This document shows, piece by piece, positions 5,468 through 54,729 of a DNA stretch of 64,000 nt; the stretch's first letter is position 1, and the number at the start of each line of letters is the position of its first letter. Made by a program: the position numbers and the translations under genes. Origin of the DNA: Eukaryota sp. TZLM1-RC (lineage: Eukaryota; Protista; Metamonada: BaSk clade); the NCBI GenBank assembly GCA_040285825.1, contig JAUPSS010000002.1, positions 1,364,001 to 1,428,000 of the forward strand. The letters are read 5' to 3'. The notes below the pieces were generated by a model, which ran no database searches, had not been told where the DNA came from, and was given only the letters and a program-made list of their open reading frames with translations.

Positions 5468-6283
5468 TTAATGGAACGAAGAACAAGCTATAGCAAAGGC
5501 CATTAAAGGAGACAGTGGACTTCTGAAATCTAATATAAACGAATCTTCACCAGTCTTGCCAAACTGCAGTACAATCTCCTCATTACTCCCACAGGTAAGT
5601 TGAAAATTCTTTTGTGATGCCATACAAACCCTGCCTCCAAAGTTCAGAACGTATGCCTCAGACGATTCATCATAGACTGGTTCTTTTTGAGACAAAACTA
5701 AATCTTGCCCAGACTCTTGATCATGAATACAAGCTGCTACGAAACGTGGTCGTTTTGTGGTCTTTAGACTTCCAGAGAAAGAAATAGAAATAATTGGCCT
5801 TCTTATTGACTGATCACAATGGTCAAAGAGTCTAGACTCCCGGCTATTCGTTTTAAAACATAACTGTGAGTCCAGAATCCCTGCAACTGAGGGTGAACAG
5901 CGAGTAAGTTCATTGGGATCTGTAGAGAATAGCAATGATAATGAGGCTGTCTTCTTTCTCTTTCTAGCAACACAGAGCAGTTGCTTATCAGATTCACGGT
6001 ACAAGAAGTACTTTGGGTAAAGGTTGAGCAAACCTGGCCGTTCTCTTATTACTGTACATCGAAGAATCTTATGTGATGTTGGTGTATGAACATATGTGAT
6101 TGGATCGAGAGCAGTGGTCAGGCCAAGCAAATCTACTGATGTTGATGAAGTTGAGCTGTGATGTTTTGAAGACCTATGGACAGGAGTATCTGGATCTTTC
6201 ACAGGAGTAGACCCTGAAGCCTTTTTAGAAGGCGATACAAGGGTGGGATGTTTGTATGTTAAGGAAGGTGAAGTGTTCCACAT
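5468..6283 (-). CDS. Tubby-like protein
   Basis: C-terminal Tubby domain (RKRKK, YVLNFGGRV.MASQKNFQL, LQFGK, LDFRSPLSPLMAFAIA). The likely start is MWNTS at 6283; the longer ORF start at 6439 lies inside the Fanzor end repeat. Confidence 0.9.
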   Translation of the reverse strand: MWNTSPSLTYKHPTLVSPSKKASGSTPVKDPDTPVHRSSKHHSSTSSTSVDLLGLTTALDPITYVHTPTSHKILRCTVIRERPGLLNLYPKYFLYRESDKQLLCVARKRKKTASLSLLFSTDPNELTRCSPSVAGILDSQLCFKTNSRESRLFDHCDQSIRRPIISISFSGSLKTTKRPRFVAACIHDQESGQDLVLSQKEPVYDESSEAYVLNFGGRVCMASQKNFQLTCGSNEEIVLQFGKTGEDSFILDFRSPLSPLMAFAIACSSFH

Positions 6284-6377
6284 ATGATATTGATGAGTTG
6301 AAGTAAGTGATGAAGTGATGAATGGTCTGTCCAAAGCTGTGCTTAAGCAGTCAGTAGTGAGGATGAGCAAGGATATA

Positions 6378-6686
6378 CTGTGAATTTCACTTATCATGCA
6401 TTCCCCTGTCAAATTCACTCCTGTTTTCAACTTTCTCAATGTCTACTCACAGGCTGTAAGAGACATGTGGCGTCATTTGACAAAGACAATCATGATCTTC
6501 ATCAATGGGCTGCCTCACTCAAATACACCTACTGCTTTCACAGAACAAAGCCTCGCGACTTGATCTATTTAAGTGGATCTACCAAATGCTACTAAGGCAT
6601 TTGTAGATCGGTCTCAAAAGTTTTTCCAAAAATTAAAAACAAAATCAAATATCAGTGTTTCAAAAGTGTTTGTTTCTGTATGCTCA
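6378..6686 (-). ncRNA. Fanzor family F1 3' end / candidate omegaRNA scaffold (copy without adjacent ORF)
   Basis: Reverse complement of 8020-8302 and direct repeat of 49895-50200, both of which directly follow a Fanzor C-terminus. Contains several hairpins. Confidence 0.7.
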
Positions 6687-6689
6687 TTT

Positions 6690-8009
6690 CTGTTCTCGAA
6701 CACCACATCAATTTCAATCTGAATAATTCAAGAGACAGATTCTTTTTATTGAATTCATGTGAGTTTATCTTGAATCTCCTTCAAAGATTTCCTGCCACTG
6801 CTTAACTACTCTTTTCACATGATAAATTTACCTTTTCATCAAAGAAAACTGGTAAGCTTTTTCTCTTTAATCTTGAAATTTCACAATACTTACTCACTTT
6901 TATTTCTCATATGCATTGCTGGAAGAAGTTTAGAATAATACCTTTAGCTTCTCATAAAGGTTTTCACTTTCATGAGATACCTTCACATGTTTTCCACTCT
7001 GTGAAAAAAATTCCACTTATTGAAGGATCATCTTCCAAAACAAAGTTCATCAAAAATACATGTCTAAAACGAATATTCAAACAATGTTCTTACCAAAAAT
7101 TTAATATCAACAGAAAAAGTTTGAAAAATAGATTTAAAATTTTTTTATTGAAAACTAATGGTAATGAACTGCTTTTGACCTTTGAAGGTAAAAATAATGA
7201 CTCAGAAAACACAGATGAGCTGGATGAATCACCGAAAAAGAAACGAAGATTAAAAAAGGAAATGAAAAGTGACCCTGATGCCAACAAAACCAGAGAAACA
7301 CAGTTGAAGGGTACTAAACAATACCCCATCGAAGACGTAGACAACCAGTCGAAATCTTGCCTGAAATGCTCCTTATTGGCGTTGATCTGGGACAATCAAG
7401 ATTATGTGGTTACTTCTTAAATGATAATCAATGTGAAGTTATCACTTGTCCAACTGGCAGAAGATACATGACAAGACCTTCACCCAGTAAACACTCTCCC
7501 AACCAATATTCCGTTCAAAATTTCAACCAATATTTGAACCATTGTAATTTGGTCACGAGGAAAATGGACTGTGAAAGTAATCGCCAGAAATGGAAAATAA
7601 TTAAATTTGATAACCGTAGACGAAAAAAGAGACGCTTCCGTGAGAGTCTCAATAAATTTCAAAGACTGGCTAGACATCCTGAAAAACTCTACCTTGCTGT
7701 GGGCACTGCTAATTTCCCTTCTTATTGCCGAAAAGTCAATCGATATGGATCAGAAAGGGCTTTCAGAAAATGGTTGTGTTATCAAAAGGACGTGAAGCAC
7801 TTGTCAACCAGTGAATTAATACAAGCAAACTGTCCAGTTGTTGCATGGCCGAGAGTGCTCAATCAGGCTCATGGCAGATGCGTATTTGTACTGAGTGTCA
7901 AATAGTATATGACAGAGATATTTCCGCTGCAAAAAATATTCAAATTAAGAAGAAAGCGGAAATGTGGCCGGAAAGATACATTTGCCCAGAAGCTCTGTTG
8001 AGGAAATGA
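6690..8009 (+). pseudogene. Fanzor (TnpB-like RuvC nuclease), family F1, frameshifted and 5'-truncated
   Basis: Across frames: RuvC-I LIGVDLG, LAVG in place of the canonical E, rearranged RuvC-II SE(F)NTSKLSSCC, zinc finger CTEC and RuvC-III YDRDISAAKNI, plus an NLS-like PKKKRRLKK. Confidence 0.85.
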
Positions 8010-8302
8010 AAGGGGATCCTGAGCATACAGAAACAAAAACTTTAGAATAACTTATATTTTATTTTGTTTTTAATTTTTTGAAAAACCTTTTGAGACCGAT
8101 TTACAAATGCCCTGGTAGCATTTGGTAGATCCACTTAGATACATCAAGTCGCGAGCCTTTGTTCTGTGAAAGCATTAGGTGTATTTAAGTCAGGTAGCCC
8201 ATTGACGAAGATCATGATTGTTTTTGTCAAATGACGCTACATGTCTCTTACAGCCTGTGAGTAGACATTGAGAAAGTTGAAAACAGGAGTGAATCTCACC
8301 GG
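8010..8302 (+). ncRNA. Candidate omegaRNA / right end of the Fanzor F1 element
   Basis: Conserved noncoding segment immediately after the Fanzor stop codon. Homology to the other two copies ends just before TATA (8303-8306). Confidence 0.7.
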
Positions 8303-8393: not shown

Positions 8394-11300
8394 ATGGTAC
8401 TTCTATCACCTGAACCAAGAACTATTAAGTCTATTGCATCTTTACAACGGCGCTCCTTTTTTCAGCGGTTGGATGTACTTCCATTTCTTCTATTGTACAC
8501 AGTAATACTACCTTTTCTCCTCATCAATTCTACACGAATTCTAATATACATATCTTATCCAGTCCTTGTTTTTTTGCACATACTTCTCTTTCTCTTTCAA
8601 CAATGGTCTCTACGCTGTAAATGCTTCGTTTCCTACAAGCCATCCCCTGTAACCTCCTCTGACTCAATATGTGTCATAACCCTTCCGCATTGTGGTTCTT
8701 CCTCCATATCCCCCCTCATTATCAACAGCCACGGTACTTTCTTTGAACATCATCGTTCTATGTACTTCTACAACACTGATAAGAAGCAGTTTTACCCTCT
8801 CAAATACCCTGACGATCTTCCTCTCACTGCTTACGTGGCACACAAAGGTATCACGTCATCCGAAATTTCATCCCCTTTCCCTTCCAATACCTACTCCTTT
8901 CCCATTCCTTCCTTCCTTTCTTTGTTCAAAGAACATGCTTTGGCTCCTTTCTTTGTCTTCCAAGTCTTTTGCGTTCTATTATGGTGCTTGGATGATTACT
9001 GGTATTATTCTGTTTTTACCCTTGTTATGCTTGTTTTGTTCGAAGCTTCGATGGTCTTTAACCGACAGAAATCCCTCAAAGAACTAACCAACCTTTCTTC
9101 CAATCCTTTTGAAGTATTTGTTTATAGAGCTGAAAGGTGGACCAAGGTCTTAACTTCGGAGTTGTTGCCGTTGGACTTGGTTTCCCTTAGCATGGCGAAA
9201 AGGTCAACTATACCGTGTGATTGTGTGGTAGTTGCTGGAACGTGTATAGTAGACGAGTCGTTGTTAACTGGTGAATCAGTCCCGCAGTACAAGGAGTCTT
9301 TAGAAGTCAATGGAAGTAGTGAGACTTTTCTTGAAGAAGAGAAGGAACACAAGGTTTCTTGTCTTTATTCAGGATCTGAAATGATTTCAATCAAATCTGA
9401 TTGCTTTAACGGCTTAAAGTCCCCAGATAACGGAGCCATTTGTGTAGTGACAAGAACTGGGTTTGCCACCAAACAAGGAAGTCTCTTGAAGTCAATGCTA
9501 TACCAAACAGAAAAGGTTTCGATTAATAACAAAGAAGCCGGCATCTTTTTGACCATCATTCTTGCATTTGCTACATTAGCAAGTGGCTATCTGTTTAAAG
9601 TAGGTTACGAGCAGCTCAAAGGCTCAGAACTAGAAGAATCTCAAAGAAATTCAAAACTTTTCAAACTAATATTGAACTGTCTGTTAACGCTCACCTCAGT
9701 CGTCCCCCCTGAATTACCAATGGAGCTCTCTTTAGCAGTTTCTTCTTCACTCAACTCCTTGGCCAAACTGGGAATTTTCTGTACCGAACCTTTTAGAATT
9801 CCCGTTGCAGGCAAAGTCAATGTCTGCTTATTTGACAAGACTGGTACCATTACGGAAGACTCTCATGTAGTTGTAGGAGTTTGTTCATGTGACCAGAATG
9901 CAGTCCAACCAGAGCTAAGAAGTGTTAGTGATCTTGATTTGCTTAGTAGAGTTACACTGGCAGGAGCAAATTCTTTATCTGTGGTGAATTCTGTTTTGGT
10001 GGGCGATTCAATGGAAAAAAGTGCAATGAAATCTGCTGGGTTTAAGCTTAAATCTGATAATTCATTGGTTGCTGTTAAAAGAGGAACGCAAAATGTGCAA
10101 TTAAAAATCTTGAAAAGATTTCCTTTTCGTTCTGTTTTAAAGAGAATGTCGACTATTTGTCGTTATGGACTGACCAATAAGGGCAGTTCACAACTCCTTT
10201 ACCTTACAAAAGGGGCTCCTGAAGCAATGAGGTCAATGTTCAAGGAAGTTCCTGTGAATTATGACCGGTTCAGTAAGTTTTATGAGCTGACAGGTCATCG
10301 AGTTCTTGCACTTGGTTACAAGCTCACTGATTTAAAGGTTGAAAATTTGAACTCTGTGACACGCACTGACACGGAAAATGATCTCATTTTCGCAGGTCTT
10401 TTGGTATTCAAATGCCCAGTTCGTCAAGGGTCTAATGAAATTATTCAAGAATTAGTAGGATCTAGACATCGTTCTGTGATTCTAACCGGTGATTCGGTGC
10501 TGACAGGTGTACACGTGGCACAATCAGTCAAAATGATTGGTCAACCAAAATCTTTGAGATCATGTCTTGTTTCCAAAAAGTCAAGGAAGCTGATCAATTT
10601 TTGTAAGTGTGGCAAAAACCTTGAGTTTTCTCAACCATTGGTGTTGATTGGGTCAGAAAGTAAGTATTTTTGGACCACTGTTGACCATCGGTTCGGTGAG
10701 GTAAGAATTGATCTCGAAGACCCTTGCCTTTCTTGCTTTGAACTTGCAATTGATGGCAATGGTCTTGAATTTTTGAAGAGTGAACATCCTCTTCTCCTGG
10801 ACAAAATATTTGAATTTATTACTGTTATAGGTAGAGCAGACCCTACCCAAAAATCTTTTGTTTCCTCTTTTCTTATTGACAAGGGTCTTATTGTATCCAT
10901 GATTGGGGATGGGTCGAACGACTGTGGAGCCCTTCGTAAGTCTAATATTGGGATTGGGTTAGTTGAAGGGAATGAAAGAATCCAGAAGCTGAGGAGGACC
11001 TATTTGAGAAATAGAAATGAAAATAGAGGTAAAGATAACAGGCCAAAAAGAGTTGATAAAAAGGTAAAGAAGGTTTCAAGCACGTTCTCAATCAAAAATG
11101 ATTGGAATGATGACGAGATTAGTCACGTGAAGCCAGGAGATGCTTCATTGGCAGCTTCCTTTTCCTCTTGTCTTCGCGGAATTGAGGGAATGAGACACGT
11201 GTTAACTTTTGGTAGAAGTTCCTTGACTGCAACACTTCAAGTCTACAAGATTTTAGCTGTAAATTCCTTAATATCAGGATATTTATTATCATTTTTGTTT

Positions 11301-11918
11301 GTCAAGGGAGTTGAATTTGGGGACTCTCAAATGGTTATTACTGGTCTCTTGACAGCTCTTTTGTTCTTTGTGGTGTCTCGTAGTCAGCCAGAAAAGGATC
11401 AATACTTATCATTTTGCCGACCACCACCAAGAGTAATTTCATTTTACACTGTTTTTTCTGTTGCTTTTCAATGTATAACCCATTTTTTTGCACTCAAGTT
11501 TGGACTTTTTCTTCTCGGGCCAGAAGCTGTAAATAAAGTCGTGGATGTAACTGACTTTGATTCGGAATTTCAGCCTTCCTCCATTAGTTCCCTGGTGTTT
11601 ATTCTTTCTCAAGCGTTCAGCTGTGCAACCTTTATCATTAACTATAGGGGCAAACCGTTTTCTTTACCTATATTTAGAAATAAGCCTCTAATCTATTCAT
11701 CAATTGGCTTTTACTTTTTCATTTTCTCCTTTTTACTCCTTCCAGAATGTTTTTTACATACATGTCTTCACATCATTTCCTTTTCCTGGGATGTAAGGTT
11801 CAAACTGCTTGGGATCATTGCTGTTGATTTCTTATTTTGTTTTAGTTTCGAATGGTTCTTCAAAACTTTGTTTACGGAAAGACAGATTACGCCTCCTGTA
11901 ACTCCAATTCGAAATTGA
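8394..11918 (+). CDS. ATP13A1: P5A-type ATPase (ATP13A1/Spf1)
   Basis: LTGES, [17 protein letters not shown], KGAPE and GDGSND motifs, plus [29 protein letters not shown]. Confidence 0.95.
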   Translation: [1174 protein letters not shown]

Positions 11919-17074: not shown

Positions 17075-17870
17075 AACTAATTTCACTTGAATAATAATAA
17101 TTGCACTAGTTTAATATCACAGCAACCAAGGCCATGTGATCTTCACTTAACAAATGAAGCTTGGAAACAAAACATGCGTTTGAGATTGGGGCTGTATCCC
17201 AGTGGTCTTTTGGATAATTCTGTTTGTATTTGTAATGAAAAACCTACTACCAATTTCCGTCATATTGTTAGTTGTAAGAAATTCCTTCAATATCGGTCAG
17301 TTCTTCATTATGCCGTTCGTGATGTGACATATGAGATGTTCAAGTGTTCCAATTTTAGTTGCAAAGTAGAACCGTTGTTGAAGCATTATAGCGATAATAA
17401 TCTGTTTAATTCACGTCGAGGTGATTTAATTGCTCCTTTTGTGGATATCTCCAAAGTTGTTGTTGATTTTACTACAGTTGATCCCTTTGCTTTTTTTATC
17501 GTGATTATGTTTTAGTTAGTTCTACTGGTCATTTAAACAAGGCTGGGGATCGTAAAAGAGACAAATATACTGAGATATTAAATGATTTAAATCAGAACCT
17601 TTACTCGTTTGTTCCTTTTGCCGTTTCGATTTTTGGCAACATTGGACAGTCTTCCTTGAATTTTATCAATGATTTTGGTAATTTATGTCGTTCAAGTGGT
17701 AAGACTTTTGCAGGGAATTTATGGAAGAATCGTATCATTTTTACTTTGTACAGAAGTGTTCCCAAGTACTTAATGATGTCCAAGCTGTATAAGGATTCAT
17801 CAAGAGTTGGCGTGGAGAATTTTGTTTCTTATGTGTTTTAGTTTGTTTTGCTTTGTTTCTTCGTAGAAAA
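17075..17870 (+). mobile_element. Family D CRE-like retrotransposon 3' fragment
   Basis: MRLRLGL...CIC..H..C..H.AVRD..VEP..RRGD..D. Near-identical to 41309-42083. Confidence 0.9.
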
Positions 17871-17909
17871 ATGATTTTACTTGATAATTTTCTTCATTGT
17901 CGACAAACA

Positions 17910-40650: not shown

Positions 40651-43225
40651 TTTTTTGAATTTTTTTAATATTTATTCCAATAAAAAACAAACTATAAGAC
40701 AAGGTTAAAATTCTATGTCTTCATAACCCAAATCAGCCAAGAAGAATTGACTAGAGGTTTTTCTTTCATAAACGCGTCCAAGAGATAACAAAGCTGAAGA
40801 TAATAAGGGAACAACCCCTTTGAAAATTGAAAATACAATTCTGTTTTGCCAAACACTCTTCCAGTACGTTGTTTCACAATTTCAACAAAATCATCCAGAA
40901 AAGACAAAGCAAGAGGTCCAAGCGTGCCATGAAGGGAAACTGCAAATGGACAGAGGACATAATGAGTATGCGATTCTGCATTCAAGGATAACAATTTTGC
41001 TTTGTATTTGTCAATTTTGGCTTTTTCGGAAACAGTTAAGGGGTTCCTATATTTTAATTGAGCCATTGGATTAATAGAACCATTACCGAAATCAGTGGAT
41101 CTCACATCTGTAATAATGGTAGTACCTTCAAGACCTCAAGCATTAAATCACCTCTATTGCGACCAAACGAATTCAAAGTATCTTCATCAACCAAACGGGA
41201 AAGTAATGGTTCTAAAAAGGAAACAATTCTATGTGATTTAGACATACAATAGAGTTGATCTCTCACCTCATCATGAACTTTGGATCGGAAAGTAATAAAA
41301 TGTTTACATTTGGTCTTCACTTAACAAATGAAGCTTGGAAACAAAACATGCGGTTGAGATTGGGGCTGTATCCAAGTGGTCTTTTGGATAATTCTGTTTG
41401 TATTTGTAACGAAAAACCTATTGCCAATTTCCGTCATATTGTTAGTTGTAAAAAAATTCCTTCAATATCGGTCAGTTCATCTTAATGCCGTTCGTGATGT
41501 GACATATGAGATGTCCAAGTGTTACAATTTTAGTTGCAAAGTAGAACCGTTGTTGAAGCATTATAGCGATAATAATCTGTTTAATTCAGGTCGAGGTAAT
41601 TTAATTGCTCCTTTTGTGGATTCCTCTCAAGTTGTTGTTGATTTTACTACAGTTGATCCCTTTGCTTTTATTTATCGTGATGATGATTTACTTAGTGCTA
41701 ATGGTCATTTAAACAAGGCTGAAGATCGTAAAAGAGATAAATATACTGAGATATTAAATGATTTAAATAAGAATCTTTACTCGAAGTTTTCGTTTGTTCC
41801 TTTTGCCTTTGCGATTTTTGGCAACATTGGACAGTCCGCTTTGAATTTTATCAATGATTTTGGTAATTTATGTCGTTCAAGTGGTAAGAATTTTGCAGGG
41901 AATTTATGGAAGAATCGTATCATTTTCGCTTTGTACAAAAGTGTTCCCAAGTACTTGAGTTTAATGATGTCCAAGCTGTATAAGGATTCATCAAGAGTTG
42001 GCGTGGAGAATTTTGTTTCTTATGTGTTTTAGTTTGTTTTGTTATGTTTTGTTATTTTTTTTAATAACTAATTTTATATTAAAAAAATGTTTACAATTGA
42101 ATAAATGATTTGGAGAAATTTTTGATCCACATTTACAAATCAAATCATGAAACACGTTATCAGGCCAAATAAAACAAGGAAGGCGCATTGTACAAGAAAA
42201 TTCGGTATCATTGAAAAGAAGACCATAATTTTGAGGAATCTGAGTAATTAAACACGAAGAGGAACTGTTTTGGGCATCTAACAAACAATTTGCAAAAGCG
42301 AAATTATCTTTTTTTGCCGAGCCAAGACGAACCTTAACATCCAATCCTCGAAAAACTGTTGTTAACGTTAGTTGCAATTGTTTAACACAATACCTCACAT
42401 TAACTAGTGTTCTAGATGGTATTTCCTGTACGTTGTCGGGAAAACATTTACTCCAAATTTCAGAGTGCAAACAATCAAGATCATTTTGTAGGTCTCTAAG
42501 AAAAGTATTGCTTGTAAAATTCAATAAATTAACATTATTGGGAAAACGGTTGCAAAATTCAAATACAAAATTTTTTCCTCCACCAAGAAAAACAGCTTGA
42601 CAGAGAATAGACGATTTAGTGAAATTAATTCCACCAAAATTAGATGATGAAAATACATGACTTCGAATTAGTTCAGGATTGACATCAATCAAAGATGCAA
42701 AAATTTTTGTTCTCAAATAGTTAAATGAGCGGCAACACTCACGTGAAACATCAGGAGATGTTGTTCTTAAAATGTGAGTAATTTTACCGGAGTAGCAAAT
42801 TTTTAAAATAAACAACTTAATATGTTTCTCAATTTCAAATGACGAAATTGTATCAAGCTCAGAACCCAATTTCATAAAAAGATTATTTAATTCTTCAGTA
42901 ATTTTTGGAACATTTCCAAGCCAGTAACCTAGGAAACGAAAAGCATCTGAGGAATAGTTAAGAAAAGGAATTTCAACACCATCTTCATGGTTAATCTATC
43001 TTTTACCTTTCCTATGAGGAGACATTTGTCGACATTAAGCAAAAGACCAATATCTCTGTAAAACAGTGAAACCTTCAGAAGCAATTTCATTTAAAACATT
43101 TAATGGACCAATAATTGAGATGTCATCCATGTACCCTACTATCTTCAACATCGGATAGCGATTACTGAAATGAATCAAAGACTTGTGAATTGCTAAACAA
43201 AAGAGTAATGGCCCAAGGGGATCAC
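40651..43225 (-). mobile_element. Family A retrotransposon, 5'-truncated at GDPLGP and interrupted by a family D copy
   Basis: 12-bp TSD AACAATGAAGAT (40639-40650 and 43226-43237), short poly(A) tail, homologous to 395-2345. Confidence 0.9.
41309..42083 (+). mobile_element. Family D retrotransposon inserted antisense into family A
   Basis: 12-bp TSD AAAATGTTTACA (41297-41308 and 42084-42095). Confidence 0.9.
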
Positions 43226-49666: not shown

Positions 49667-49894
49667 TCTCTTAGATGAACAATTGAATTGATAAAATCCC
49701 TGAAATGGAAAGGTATTCCATCTGTTGTTGTTGTATTAATATTGTTCACAGGATTGCGAATTGCAACTGCTATAGTCACTTATTTTACAAAACCAAGTTG
49801 TTTATTACACCTTCCATGAGGTTACAACTGTTCAGTTTCTAAACATCAATAAGCGAACTGATTTAGTTCAGGAACTAAGCTAACTTTCATTATA

Positions 49895-51063
49895 CTGTGA
49901 ATTTCACTTATCATGCATTCCCCTGTGAAATTCACTCCTGTTTTCAACTTTCTCAATGTCTACTCACAGGCTGTAAGAGACACGTAGCATCATTTACCAA
50001 AGACAATCATGATCTTCATCAATGGGCTACCTCACCTAAATACACCTACTGCTTTCACAGAACTAAGCCTTGCAACTTGATGTATCTAAGTGGATCTACC
50101 AAATGCTACTAAGGTATTTGTAGATCGGTCTCAAAAGTTTTTCAAAAAAAATTGAAATAAAATATCAGTTTTTCAAAAGTTTTTGTTTCTGTATGCTCAT
50201 AGTCCCCATTCATCATCTCAACAGAGCTTCTGGGCAAATGTATCTTTCCGGTCACAATTCCGCTTTCTTCTTTATTTGAATATTTTTTGCAGCGGAAATA
50301 TCTCTGTCATATACTATTTGACACTCAGTACAAATACGCATCTGCCATGAGCTTGCTTGAATATTCTCGGCCATGCAACAACTGAACAGTTTGCTTGTAT
50401 TAAATTCACTGGTTGACAAGTCCTTCACAACCATTTTCTGAAAGCTCTTGCTGATCCATATCGATTGACTTTTCGCCAATGAGAAGGGAAATTAGCAGAA
50501 CCCACAGCAAGATAGAGTTTATCAGGATGTCCAGCCAGCCTTTGAAATTTGTTGAGAGTCTCTCTGAACCGAGAGACCTGTCTTGTGGGCATTCTGGAAG
50601 AAATCCATTGTAAAAGATATGGAGTAATTGGCGTTGGCCTTTAGATGTGGAAGGCTTTGGAAATTAACCAGTGGTGATGACGGTCATAAACAGATACCAT
50701 ACATCCTGTTCCACTAAAGCTCTAGATGCCAACGGAAAATTTAGAAGAAAAGATTGAAGCAGTAAAGAAGCTTCATGACAAATCTCGGTGACCAAAGGAA
50801 GGTCAGTCCGAATTTGTTGCACCGCTGCAGGGGTCAGCGGCGAGTTAATTGCACAAGACCGAGTGAATACACGTGACACAGAGGGGGTGTCTGTCATGTA
50901 GTGAGAATAAACACAATAAACATCTCATCTATCAAATTTTACACTTGTCACCCCATTTTCGACTTCTGGTTGCCTGTTCTGGGAGGTTTTTAACCCTCAA
51001 CTTGGTTTTGGGAGGTTTTCACTATTCCCACACTTTCCCCTAAATTAGGTTCATAAACTAGGT
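49895..51063 (-). mobile_element. Fanzor F1 internal-deletion derivative: left end, ORF N-terminus (50897-~50575), ORF C-terminus (~50570-50210) and omegaRNA-like right end (50200-49895)
   Basis: FRETLNKFQRLAGHP...STSEFNTSKLFSCC...CTECQIVYDRDISAAKNI, homologous to 7636-8009; same 3' segment. Confidence 0.85.
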
Positions 51064-51098
51064 ATCCTTTGTAAAAGTTTCTGGAATTTCAACTCTAT

Positions 51099-51740: not shown

Positions 51741-52004
51741 TAAAGCAAGTTATTTTGTAAATAAATAGTTGATGTTTTTTGTTGTTTATTTGAACATTAT
51801 TGGCATGTTATTATGCAAAGAAGCTCCTTAACTGTGTGTTCTAGGTTTTCTGTGTTTTATGTCTACACCATTAAGTAAAAGTTAATGGATAACAAAGTTA
51901 GATTTGACCTTCGCAAGGTCAAGGGCTCGTCGAGTAGGGCTACACTACTTTCATTTGTGATGTAAAGTATTAATTTTTCTTTTTAATTAATTAATTTTAT
52001 TCTA

Positions 52005-52250
52005 GGAAGAAACAAAACAAAACAAACTAAAATACATGAGAAACAAAATTCTCCACGGGAACTCTTGATGAATCCTGATACAGCTTGGACATCATTAAAT
52101 TTAAGTATTTAGGAACACTTCTGTACAAAGCAAAAAAGATACGATTCTTCCATAAATTCCCTGCAAAATTCTTACCACTTGAACGACATAAATTATCAAA
52201 ATCATTGAGAAAATTTAAGGCAGGCTGTCCAATGTTGCCAAAAATCGCAT
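52005..52250 (-). mobile_element. Family D retrotransposon 3' tip
   Basis: Reverse complement of 41810-42045. Confidence 0.85.
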
Positions 52251-52437
52251 CTGATTAAGTCAGAAACACAAAAAAGGGATTAGGTAGGGATTAGGTAGGG
52301 AAGGGAAAAGAAAAGGGATCAGTACACTCTTCCATAAAGGTATTCAACATAAAATTCAACCACAATAATAGAAAATGTTTTCTCCCACTTGTTAACCGCT
52401 TTTCCTTGACATAACATCATCTTGTTTCATCACATTA

Positions 52438-53799: not shown

Positions 53800-54729
53800 T
53801 GGAAAAATCCAAAATGCTACAGATTCACTGTAGTAAAAGACTATAACTTGTAACAAATATGGAGGCTTCTCACCAACACTATCCTCTACAAAATAATCTA
53901 CAATTGTCTTGATTTTGATACGTGCTAACTTGTTACGATTCCATTCCTTATCCTTTCCATCATATTCTTCTCTACAAACATCAGATTGACATCTTAACAA
54001 AGCATGACATTTCACAGCAGGTTATTTCTCTCTCATTCATGGTCTAGGATTCTCAACATCAAGAAACACTTTTACTGGTTTATAACAAGTTGGACACTTT
54101 GAAGATATGTTTCTTTCATCAACTAAACATACTGTATAACCATTTCACTTAAAGAAATTTCTCCATCCAACTCCTCTACTTGATCGATGATGCTTTAGAT
54201 TCTTTATCTTATTGCCATTGTCACCAAACATTAGCATAGTGTCTTCTTGCTTCCATTGCTTCTCAGCCATTCTTTTTAATAACTTAGCCTCTGCTTTTGA
54301 TGATGGACATATCTTTGCATTTTCTGAATGTGCCATATCATTAAACAGTAGTAATAAAATGTAAATGTAATGTTTATCAGCTTGGAAGCAACATAAGAAT
54401 AGAAATTATTATAAATAAAAGATTTTGATGATTCTTTTGATAAAGTAGCTTCAGTTATTTCCACTTTGATTCCATTTTGTAAAATGTACTCTTTCTTTTT
54501 CAATTTTCTGAATTTTTGGTGAACTCTCGATACCCTTGACCACTCCAATTCTGTCAATCTCAGCCACTTATATCGTTTGTCTCTTTTTAGTTGGTCTTTT
54601 GCATTAAGTTTGAATCTTTTTTGACTACAAAAATATAGTAAATCACTTTTTCCACTTTTGCCTGTTGTGGCAGGTTTTTAACCCTCAACTCTCTTGTCCC
54701 TCACTTTTCCCTCACTTCATAAACTAGGT
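53800..54729 (-). pseudogene. Fanzor1 family F2 remnant (C-terminal half) with left-end sequence
   Basis: Joined frames: EATLSKESSKS...F.SY; MFGD...KHH.SSRGVGWR; VCLVDERNISSKCPTC; VENPRP; KCHALLRCQSDVC...WNRN..A...GEKPPYL. Confidence 0.85.

Follow-up and report, generated by a model that had tools for sequence, protein, structure and literature searches.

The right end of a Fanzor-like transposon family in Skoliomonas litria as a candidate omegaRNA scaffold

The repeated segment and the nuclease gene upstream of it

Three segments rich in hairpins lie in the 64,000-nt window (the whole stretch of DNA that was analysed, from assembly GCA_040285825.1 of Eukaryota sp. TZLM1-RC, which is Skoliomonas litria, a metamonad from a soda lake), and they raise the question of what such a segment is: the end of a mobile element, the scaffold of a guide RNA, or both. 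An earlier note on this DNA had described the three as homologous, and this was borne out. We found that 49894-50199 (minus strand), 6377-6686 (minus) and 8020-8302 (plus), hereafter copies C, A and B, are versions of one segment of ~306 nt that are 88-94% identical. In alignments, copy A (6374-6687) was 91.7% identical to copy C (49891-50200) over 314 nt, and copy B (7633-8302) was 88.2% identical to copy C (50571-49922) over 671 nt; the repeat-finder pairs among the window copies (D9, I8 and I9) gave 89-94%. Further copies were gathered in the same assembly, first with HMMER, for which the 182-aa ORF of copy B served as query, and then from the contig loci (given below with an L number), so that the set comprised 13 copies: the three of the window and ten further full or partial ones, with one additional copy cut by the end of its locus. 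Positions 8054-8093, which lie in copy B, were left out of the covariance model R1, its window search and the local BLAST databases, and copy B contributes to alignments and pair counts only.

A broken reading frame lies directly upstream of copies B and C, and its last piece carries ...CTECQIVYDRDISAAKNI..., a motif that is the RuvC-III signature of TnpB/Fanzor proteins. The ORF piece just upstream of copy C matched PF07282 (Cas12f1-like TNB, zinc ribbon) with 31.8 bits against a cut-off of 26.3 bits, and in B, C and nine fetched copies the TNB-domain ORF has its stop 13 nt upstream of the segment. The segment thus spans from ~13 nt after a TnpB/Fanzor-type stop codon to a fixed base (...GTGAAATTCACAGT), as in copy C, where the right end is complete and closes with ...CACAGT. 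The family comprises more than 100 annotated fragments, and one 90% cluster holds 82 members, among them a complete 651-aa protein (P0048) with GVDLG, SEFNTSK, a CC...CxxC zinc finger and DRD; the series GVDLG...NTSK...CC..CTEC...DRD was found in P0048, P0037, P0015 and the ORF pieces of the window. The S. litria family protein carries the Fanzor motif D-X(125,275)-[TS][TS]-X-X-C4 zinc finger-X(5,50)-RD (Bao and Jurka, 2013; PMC3627910). The S. litria genome encodes at least one intact nuclease of 651 aa (gene accession KAL0223451.1), and Skoliomonas sp. GEM-RC has intact homologues of 646-648 aa that are ~58% identical (KAL0243225.1 and KAL0242974.1). That the family might be wholly dead is ruled out by the intact 651-aa cluster member. 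In the PDB, the hits of a family profile were confined to Cas12m and TranC, and there to the TNB region; a sequence search of the family protein against solved Fanzor structures gave no match, and AlphaFold models were of low confidence (pLDDT 37 for P0009 and 39 for the intact P0048).

More distant homologues, 33-40% identical to P0048, occur in TZLM3-RCL (Skoliomonas sp.) at L008:3923-7980 and L009:4185-7149, each with an XPG/FEN-type nuclease gene immediately upstream. Behind the intact TZLM3-RCL homologue, of 659 aa, a WD40 gene begins after a gap of only 85 nt, and there is therefore no room for a comparable 3′ segment. R1 found nothing at these two loci or at two metagenome loci.

Anatomy of the element

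A full-length element of ~2.4 kb (L005:8557-10962) consists of a left-end module, one Fanzor ORF of ~650 aa and the 3′ segment, in that order. All copies with readable DNA are frameshifted, truncated or internally deleted, and in the window none has an intact ORF. Element C (49894-51079, minus) is an internally deleted Fanzor that keeps the left-end module, an N-terminal ORF piece at 50664-50897 (77 aa), a C-terminal TNB piece at 50252-50479 (75 aa) and the full right end. Element B (6688-8302, plus) is truncated at its 5′ side inside the ORF, which survives as frameshifted pieces at 6911-7420, 7357-7905 and 7845-8009, and its 3′ segment (8020-8302) extends no further than the 5′ arm of the terminal hairpin: ~30 nt are missing from the tip of the right end, host DNA follows after CACCGG, and the junction between scaffold and guide is absent. 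Solo copy A (6377-6686, minus) consists of the 3′ segment by itself, with a complete right end and no ORF, and its 5′ end lies 13 nt past the position of the stop codon. Since another solo segment (L012:1-185) breaks at a different place on its 5′ side, the 5′ end of copy A is a truncation point and not the 5′ end of an RNA.

Copies A (minus) and B (plus) abut head-to-head at 6686/6688, with no spacer, so that the two right ends face outward, one toward a tubby-like gene (5468-6283, minus) and the other toward a P-type ATPase gene (8394-11918, plus), host genes that are themselves divergent; this junction was found in none of the fetched loci. The mechanical ORF of the tubby-like gene (5468-6439, minus) begins with TTG within copy A, and its first ~20 codons therefore derive from the transposon; translation probably begins at the ATG near 6283 instead.

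At the left end, a 5′ module (GAACCTAGTTTATGAAGTGAGGGG...) is common to all copies, and three differing sequences lie upstream of it (sites compared: window 50956-51079 and 54648-54690; L003, L005, L007, L010 and L012). One of the three is shared with another Fanzor family of the window, at 54.6 kb. Just 5′ of the point where left-end homology starts, four of five copies read ...CAG (TCCAG, TCCAG, TACAG, TACAG and TACCA, at sites that include 51080-51082, L005:~8562, L007:~7596 and L012:~2388, with flanks that are not all independent). This CAG, which matches the right-end ...ACAG(T), may be a cleavage motif, a TAM motif or part of the element. The left-end flanks had by eye resembled remnants of right-end tips, and this was rejected when alignment scores fell within those of shuffles. 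Between the left and right ends of the full-length copy (L005:8480-11020) no terminal inverted repeats of the ~30-nt SpuFz1 type were found. Another repeat family of ~270 nt, 89-95% identical, occurs in the window at 51997-52272, 41787-42049 and 17607-17871; it has a sharp common end (…GTTTTGTTTCTTC.TAGAA) beyond which the flanks diverge, and probably forms the end of another element.

The right-end boundary and the fold

Eight of the 13 copies share a common last base in ...GTGAAATTCA(C/T)AGT, with no similarity beyond it; after the shared T their flanks read ATAATG, ATATCC, TAAAAA, TTTATG, ACTCCA, TTATAG, ACCTTC and AAATTT. The earlier note had drawn a shared end at G|TATA. A sharp common end was indeed present, but because these eight copies end in ...CA(C/T)AGT the boundary sits one base further 3′, and TATA is not conserved: ATA follows the shared T only in copies A and C, and the TATA at copy B follows a truncated end (CACCGG|TATA) and is a coincidence. 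TATA as the terminus or as a target-site preference is likewise not upheld, given genome copies without it and flanks that are merely A/T-rich, with A or T in 28 of 32 cases over the first four flank bases, a mild preference only. The invariant terminal T may be a base of the element or a conserved target base, two possibilities that the alignment does not separate.

With regard to raggedness, which had been named as a point against the proposal, the boundary is sharp in the eight copies and ragged in the other five, which are 3′-truncated, three within the terminal hairpin and two within the first hairpin. No displacing insertion was found within 10 kb of the missing right-end tips of B, L002 and L007. 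The breaks in L003:10211-10612 and L006:10108-10621 lie at most 10 nt apart in the first core hairpin, after GCATTTGGTA and GCATT, and hairpins may be deletion hot spots. At L001:11369-11420 a complete right end is directly followed by part of another terminal arm (…AAGTGAAATTCAC…ACAG), which may be left over from an insertion that had hit this spot before.

The consensus structure consists of a closed multi-branch core of 194 nt and a terminal hairpin of 11 bp. In copy C the core, which is the region of R1, occupies 49946-50139 (minus) and comprises a closing helix and four hairpin arms, and the terminal hairpin occupies 49897-49935 (minus), with a perfect stem, a 17-nt loop and an end 3 nt short of the element end. 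Copy alignment also delimits a T-rich variable linker (50140-50184, minus, in copy C), which measures 45-77 nt in six of 11 copies and is missing in five, and is for that reason probably not essential scaffold; any functional part would probably begin with the core and measure ~245 nt. An indel of 45-77 nt within the segment counts against an omegaRNA.

Three of the four stems that had been named reappeared in the consensus fold (GATCTACAAATGC/GCATTTGGTAGATC, ATGTCTCTTACA/TGTGAGTAGACAT and the terminal GTGAATTTCAC/GTGAAATTCAC hairpin), and the fourth, GCTTT/AAAGC, was not favoured. The fold instead prefers CUGU/GCAG, where the pair at alignment columns 163-168 occurs as UG, CG and UA; the UA variant arises by a G-to-A change that would disrupt GCTTT/AAAGC. 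The terminal hairpin is, as had been described, perfect in C, one mismatch short of perfect in A (6380-6418) and without its 3′ arm in B. The fold energy was -77.6 kcal/mol (z -2.55) for copy C and -82.5 kcal/mol (z -3.10) for copy A; the antisense strand of C gave -63.5 kcal/mol with a similar z-score (-2.94), which counts against the omegaRNA reading. Across 11 copies, 96.7% of cells were paired in the consensus structure, and about nine of its pairs are G-U, which would become mismatches if read on the other strand.

Covariation, which the earlier note had proposed as a check, did not appear: double changes were found in 0 of 86 pairs and all measures equalled those of shuffles, in a set of 11 near-identical copies that gives the test no power because the copies are too alike (core 94-97% identical). 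Variation was equal in paired and unpaired core columns (p=0.57), and pairing was kept by 18 of 26 transitions, which is not clearly above the roughly half expected by chance. Identity between copies was higher in the core (94%) than in the ORF (90-93%). Substitutions relative to the consensus amounted to 3.0% in the core and 4.5% in the ORF (p=0.002 for all copies; p=0.11 once the two most decayed copies were dropped), and one indel was seen in the core against 22 in the adjacent ORF. Rfam gave no match for the segment at gathering or E-value thresholds, and R1 retrieved family copies only, with no hit behind any of the window's other Fanzor families.

What the right end may encode

We regard it as nearly certain that the segment is the right end of a Fanzor element. 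By experiment, Fanzor omegaRNAs have been traced to a conserved non-coding stretch that runs from the stop codon of the TnpB-like ORF to the right end of the transposon (PMC10432273). In published Fanzor loci the omegaRNA lies at the right end and ORF-less 'ghost' copies are known (PMC10432273, PMC10530073), and in the mimivirus Fanzor a conserved non-coding stretch reaches 200 nt past the ORF (PMC10530073). By analogy with these loci, the S. litria right end probably encodes the omegaRNA scaffold of its family, with the flank as guide, a reading that we base on position, architecture and the intact nuclease and not on covariation or expression. The earlier note's proposal of a scaffold with a flank guide is accordingly strengthened by position, fold, the sharp ends of most copies and the intact nuclease, and draws no support from covariation, TATA, the five ragged ends or the length of the segment.

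In the mechanism that we propose for this multi-copy, Fanzor1-like transposon family of Skoliomonas litria, the sense strand of the non-coding right end would give rise to an omegaRNA, with all or the 3′ part of the segment as scaffold (by analogy with SpuFz1, GtFz1 and ApmFz2) and, again by analogy, the next ~15-20 nt of host DNA as guide. The candidate guides would be the first 20 nt of flank, at 49874-49893 (minus) for copy C, by analogy with PMC10432273, and at 6357-6376 (minus) for copy A, upstream of the tubby-like host gene. The intact 651-aa nuclease would load such an RNA and cut DNA that matches the flank beside a TAM. Copies C (internally deleted) and A (solo) retain the junction of scaffold and flank and could at most supply RNA in trans; copy B should be inert, because it has lost that junction. 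Known Fanzor1 omegaRNAs measure 75-150 nt (PMC11423790), and since the segment, at 260-330 nt, is 2-4 times as long, only part of it may be scaffold.

The segment could instead be only a cis-acting DNA terminus with a 3′ UTR, its hairpin and fixed end being mobility signals, for example of a rolling-circle/HUH type; any omegaRNA would in that case either be far shorter, limited to the last ~60-100 nt, or lie elsewhere. This is rather unlikely on our assessment, although several observations fit it: the left and right ends lack terminal inverted repeats, the 11-bp hairpin stops 3 nt before the element end, many copies are 5′-truncated, three 5′ regions are joined to one 3′ end, the z-scores of the two strands are nearly equal, and covariation is absent. 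In Chlamydomonas, Fanzor1 elements are borne by Helitron2. The truncation and 5′-mosaic pattern is known from Helitron-type Fanzor1 elements (Bao and Jurka; PMC3627910), and the Helitron2-borne CRe-1/2/3 and MCi-2 share with the S. litria family asymmetric ends with a 3′ subterminal hairpin, an excess of 5′-truncated copies and subfamilies with different 5′ regions and one 3′ end (PMC3627910). A hairpin is present in S. litria, but the Helitron consensus ends (5′-TC / CTRR-3′) are unmatched, as the right end is CACAGT and not CTRR and the left end is mosaic, and the target-site duplications or T-rich 5′ target of Helitron2-borne elements are not demonstrated for this family. Moreover, no Rep/helicase gene was seen in the examined loci, and 3′ truncations (5 of 13) nearly match 5′ truncations (7 of 13), a pattern that random decay explains no less well than one-ended replication. 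The guide RNA of every Fanzor tested to date comes from the right-end region (PMC10432273, PMC10530073). A cis-acting terminus and an omegaRNA are not mutually exclusive.

It is much less probable still that the right ends were co-opted as promoters or 5′ UTRs of adjacent host genes and retained for that role. Eight of the 13 right ends, including all three of the window, point toward the next annotated gene, which runs in the same direction and starts 39-228 nt away, but by orientation eight of 13 is not significantly different from 50%, any intergenic insert in a compact genome lies near a gene start, and the copies decay at about the neutral rate. An antisense small protein (ORF of 71-78 aa, e.g. 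49897-50112, plus), although its ORF is present in copies A, C and L005, is rejected as a gene in view of GTG starts in most copies, an open frame in only six of 11, and substitutions of 28/13/24 at codon positions 1/2/3, with no third-position excess.

Returning to the omegaRNA reading, we compared the S. litria right end with characterised systems. SpuFz1/Spu-1 of Spizellomyces punctatus (Saito et al., 2023; PMC10432273) likewise has a sharp conserved end and a variable flank, and its 'ghost' elements keep the right end in ORF-less or deleted copies, as do copies A and C. The Spu scaffold, however, is 75 nt long and lies within a 30-nt inverted repeat, whereas the S. litria segment measures 260-330 nt and belongs to an element in which no terminal inverted repeats were detected. 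The Spu RNA has been sequenced and found bound to its nuclease; that of S. litria is a putative one. The GtFz1 omegaRNA (150 nt, four stem-loops; Xu et al., 2024; PMC11423790) is likewise a multi-stem-loop scaffold from a protist Fanzor1, and its guide directly follows the final stem, where the candidate guide of S. litria also lies; it differs in overlapping the end of the ORF and in being about half as long, and no similarity in sequence or model to the S. litria segment was detected. The bacterial ISDra2 TnpB (IS200/IS605) shares the logic of a right-end RNA, a flank guide and a TAM that would sit beside the left end, and differs in that its scaffold overlaps the 3′ end of tnpB and the element is moved by TnpA.

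Solo and deleted right ends such as those of A and C, close upstream of host gene starts, might also be live orphan guide-RNA genes that direct the intact nuclease in trans with guides from host promoters or 5′ UTRs. We hold this to be very unlikely; if true, the family would mark or cut empty alleles at gene-start sites (gene-start homing) or influence genes.

A text search of the Fanzor survey PMC10530073 gave no mention of Metamonada, and neither Fanzor nor TnpB is named in the Skoliomonas genome paper. Judged by sequence, the family is a new and very divergent one, with a nuclease that matches no solved Fanzor. The outcome is a concrete pair of protein and RNA for testing, a well-placed candidate and not a discovery. 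Confirmation of the RNA would make this a Fanzor system in Metamonada, and a scaffold 2-4 times the size of known Fanzor1 omegaRNAs would, if true, widen the range of eukaryotic RNA-guided nucleases.
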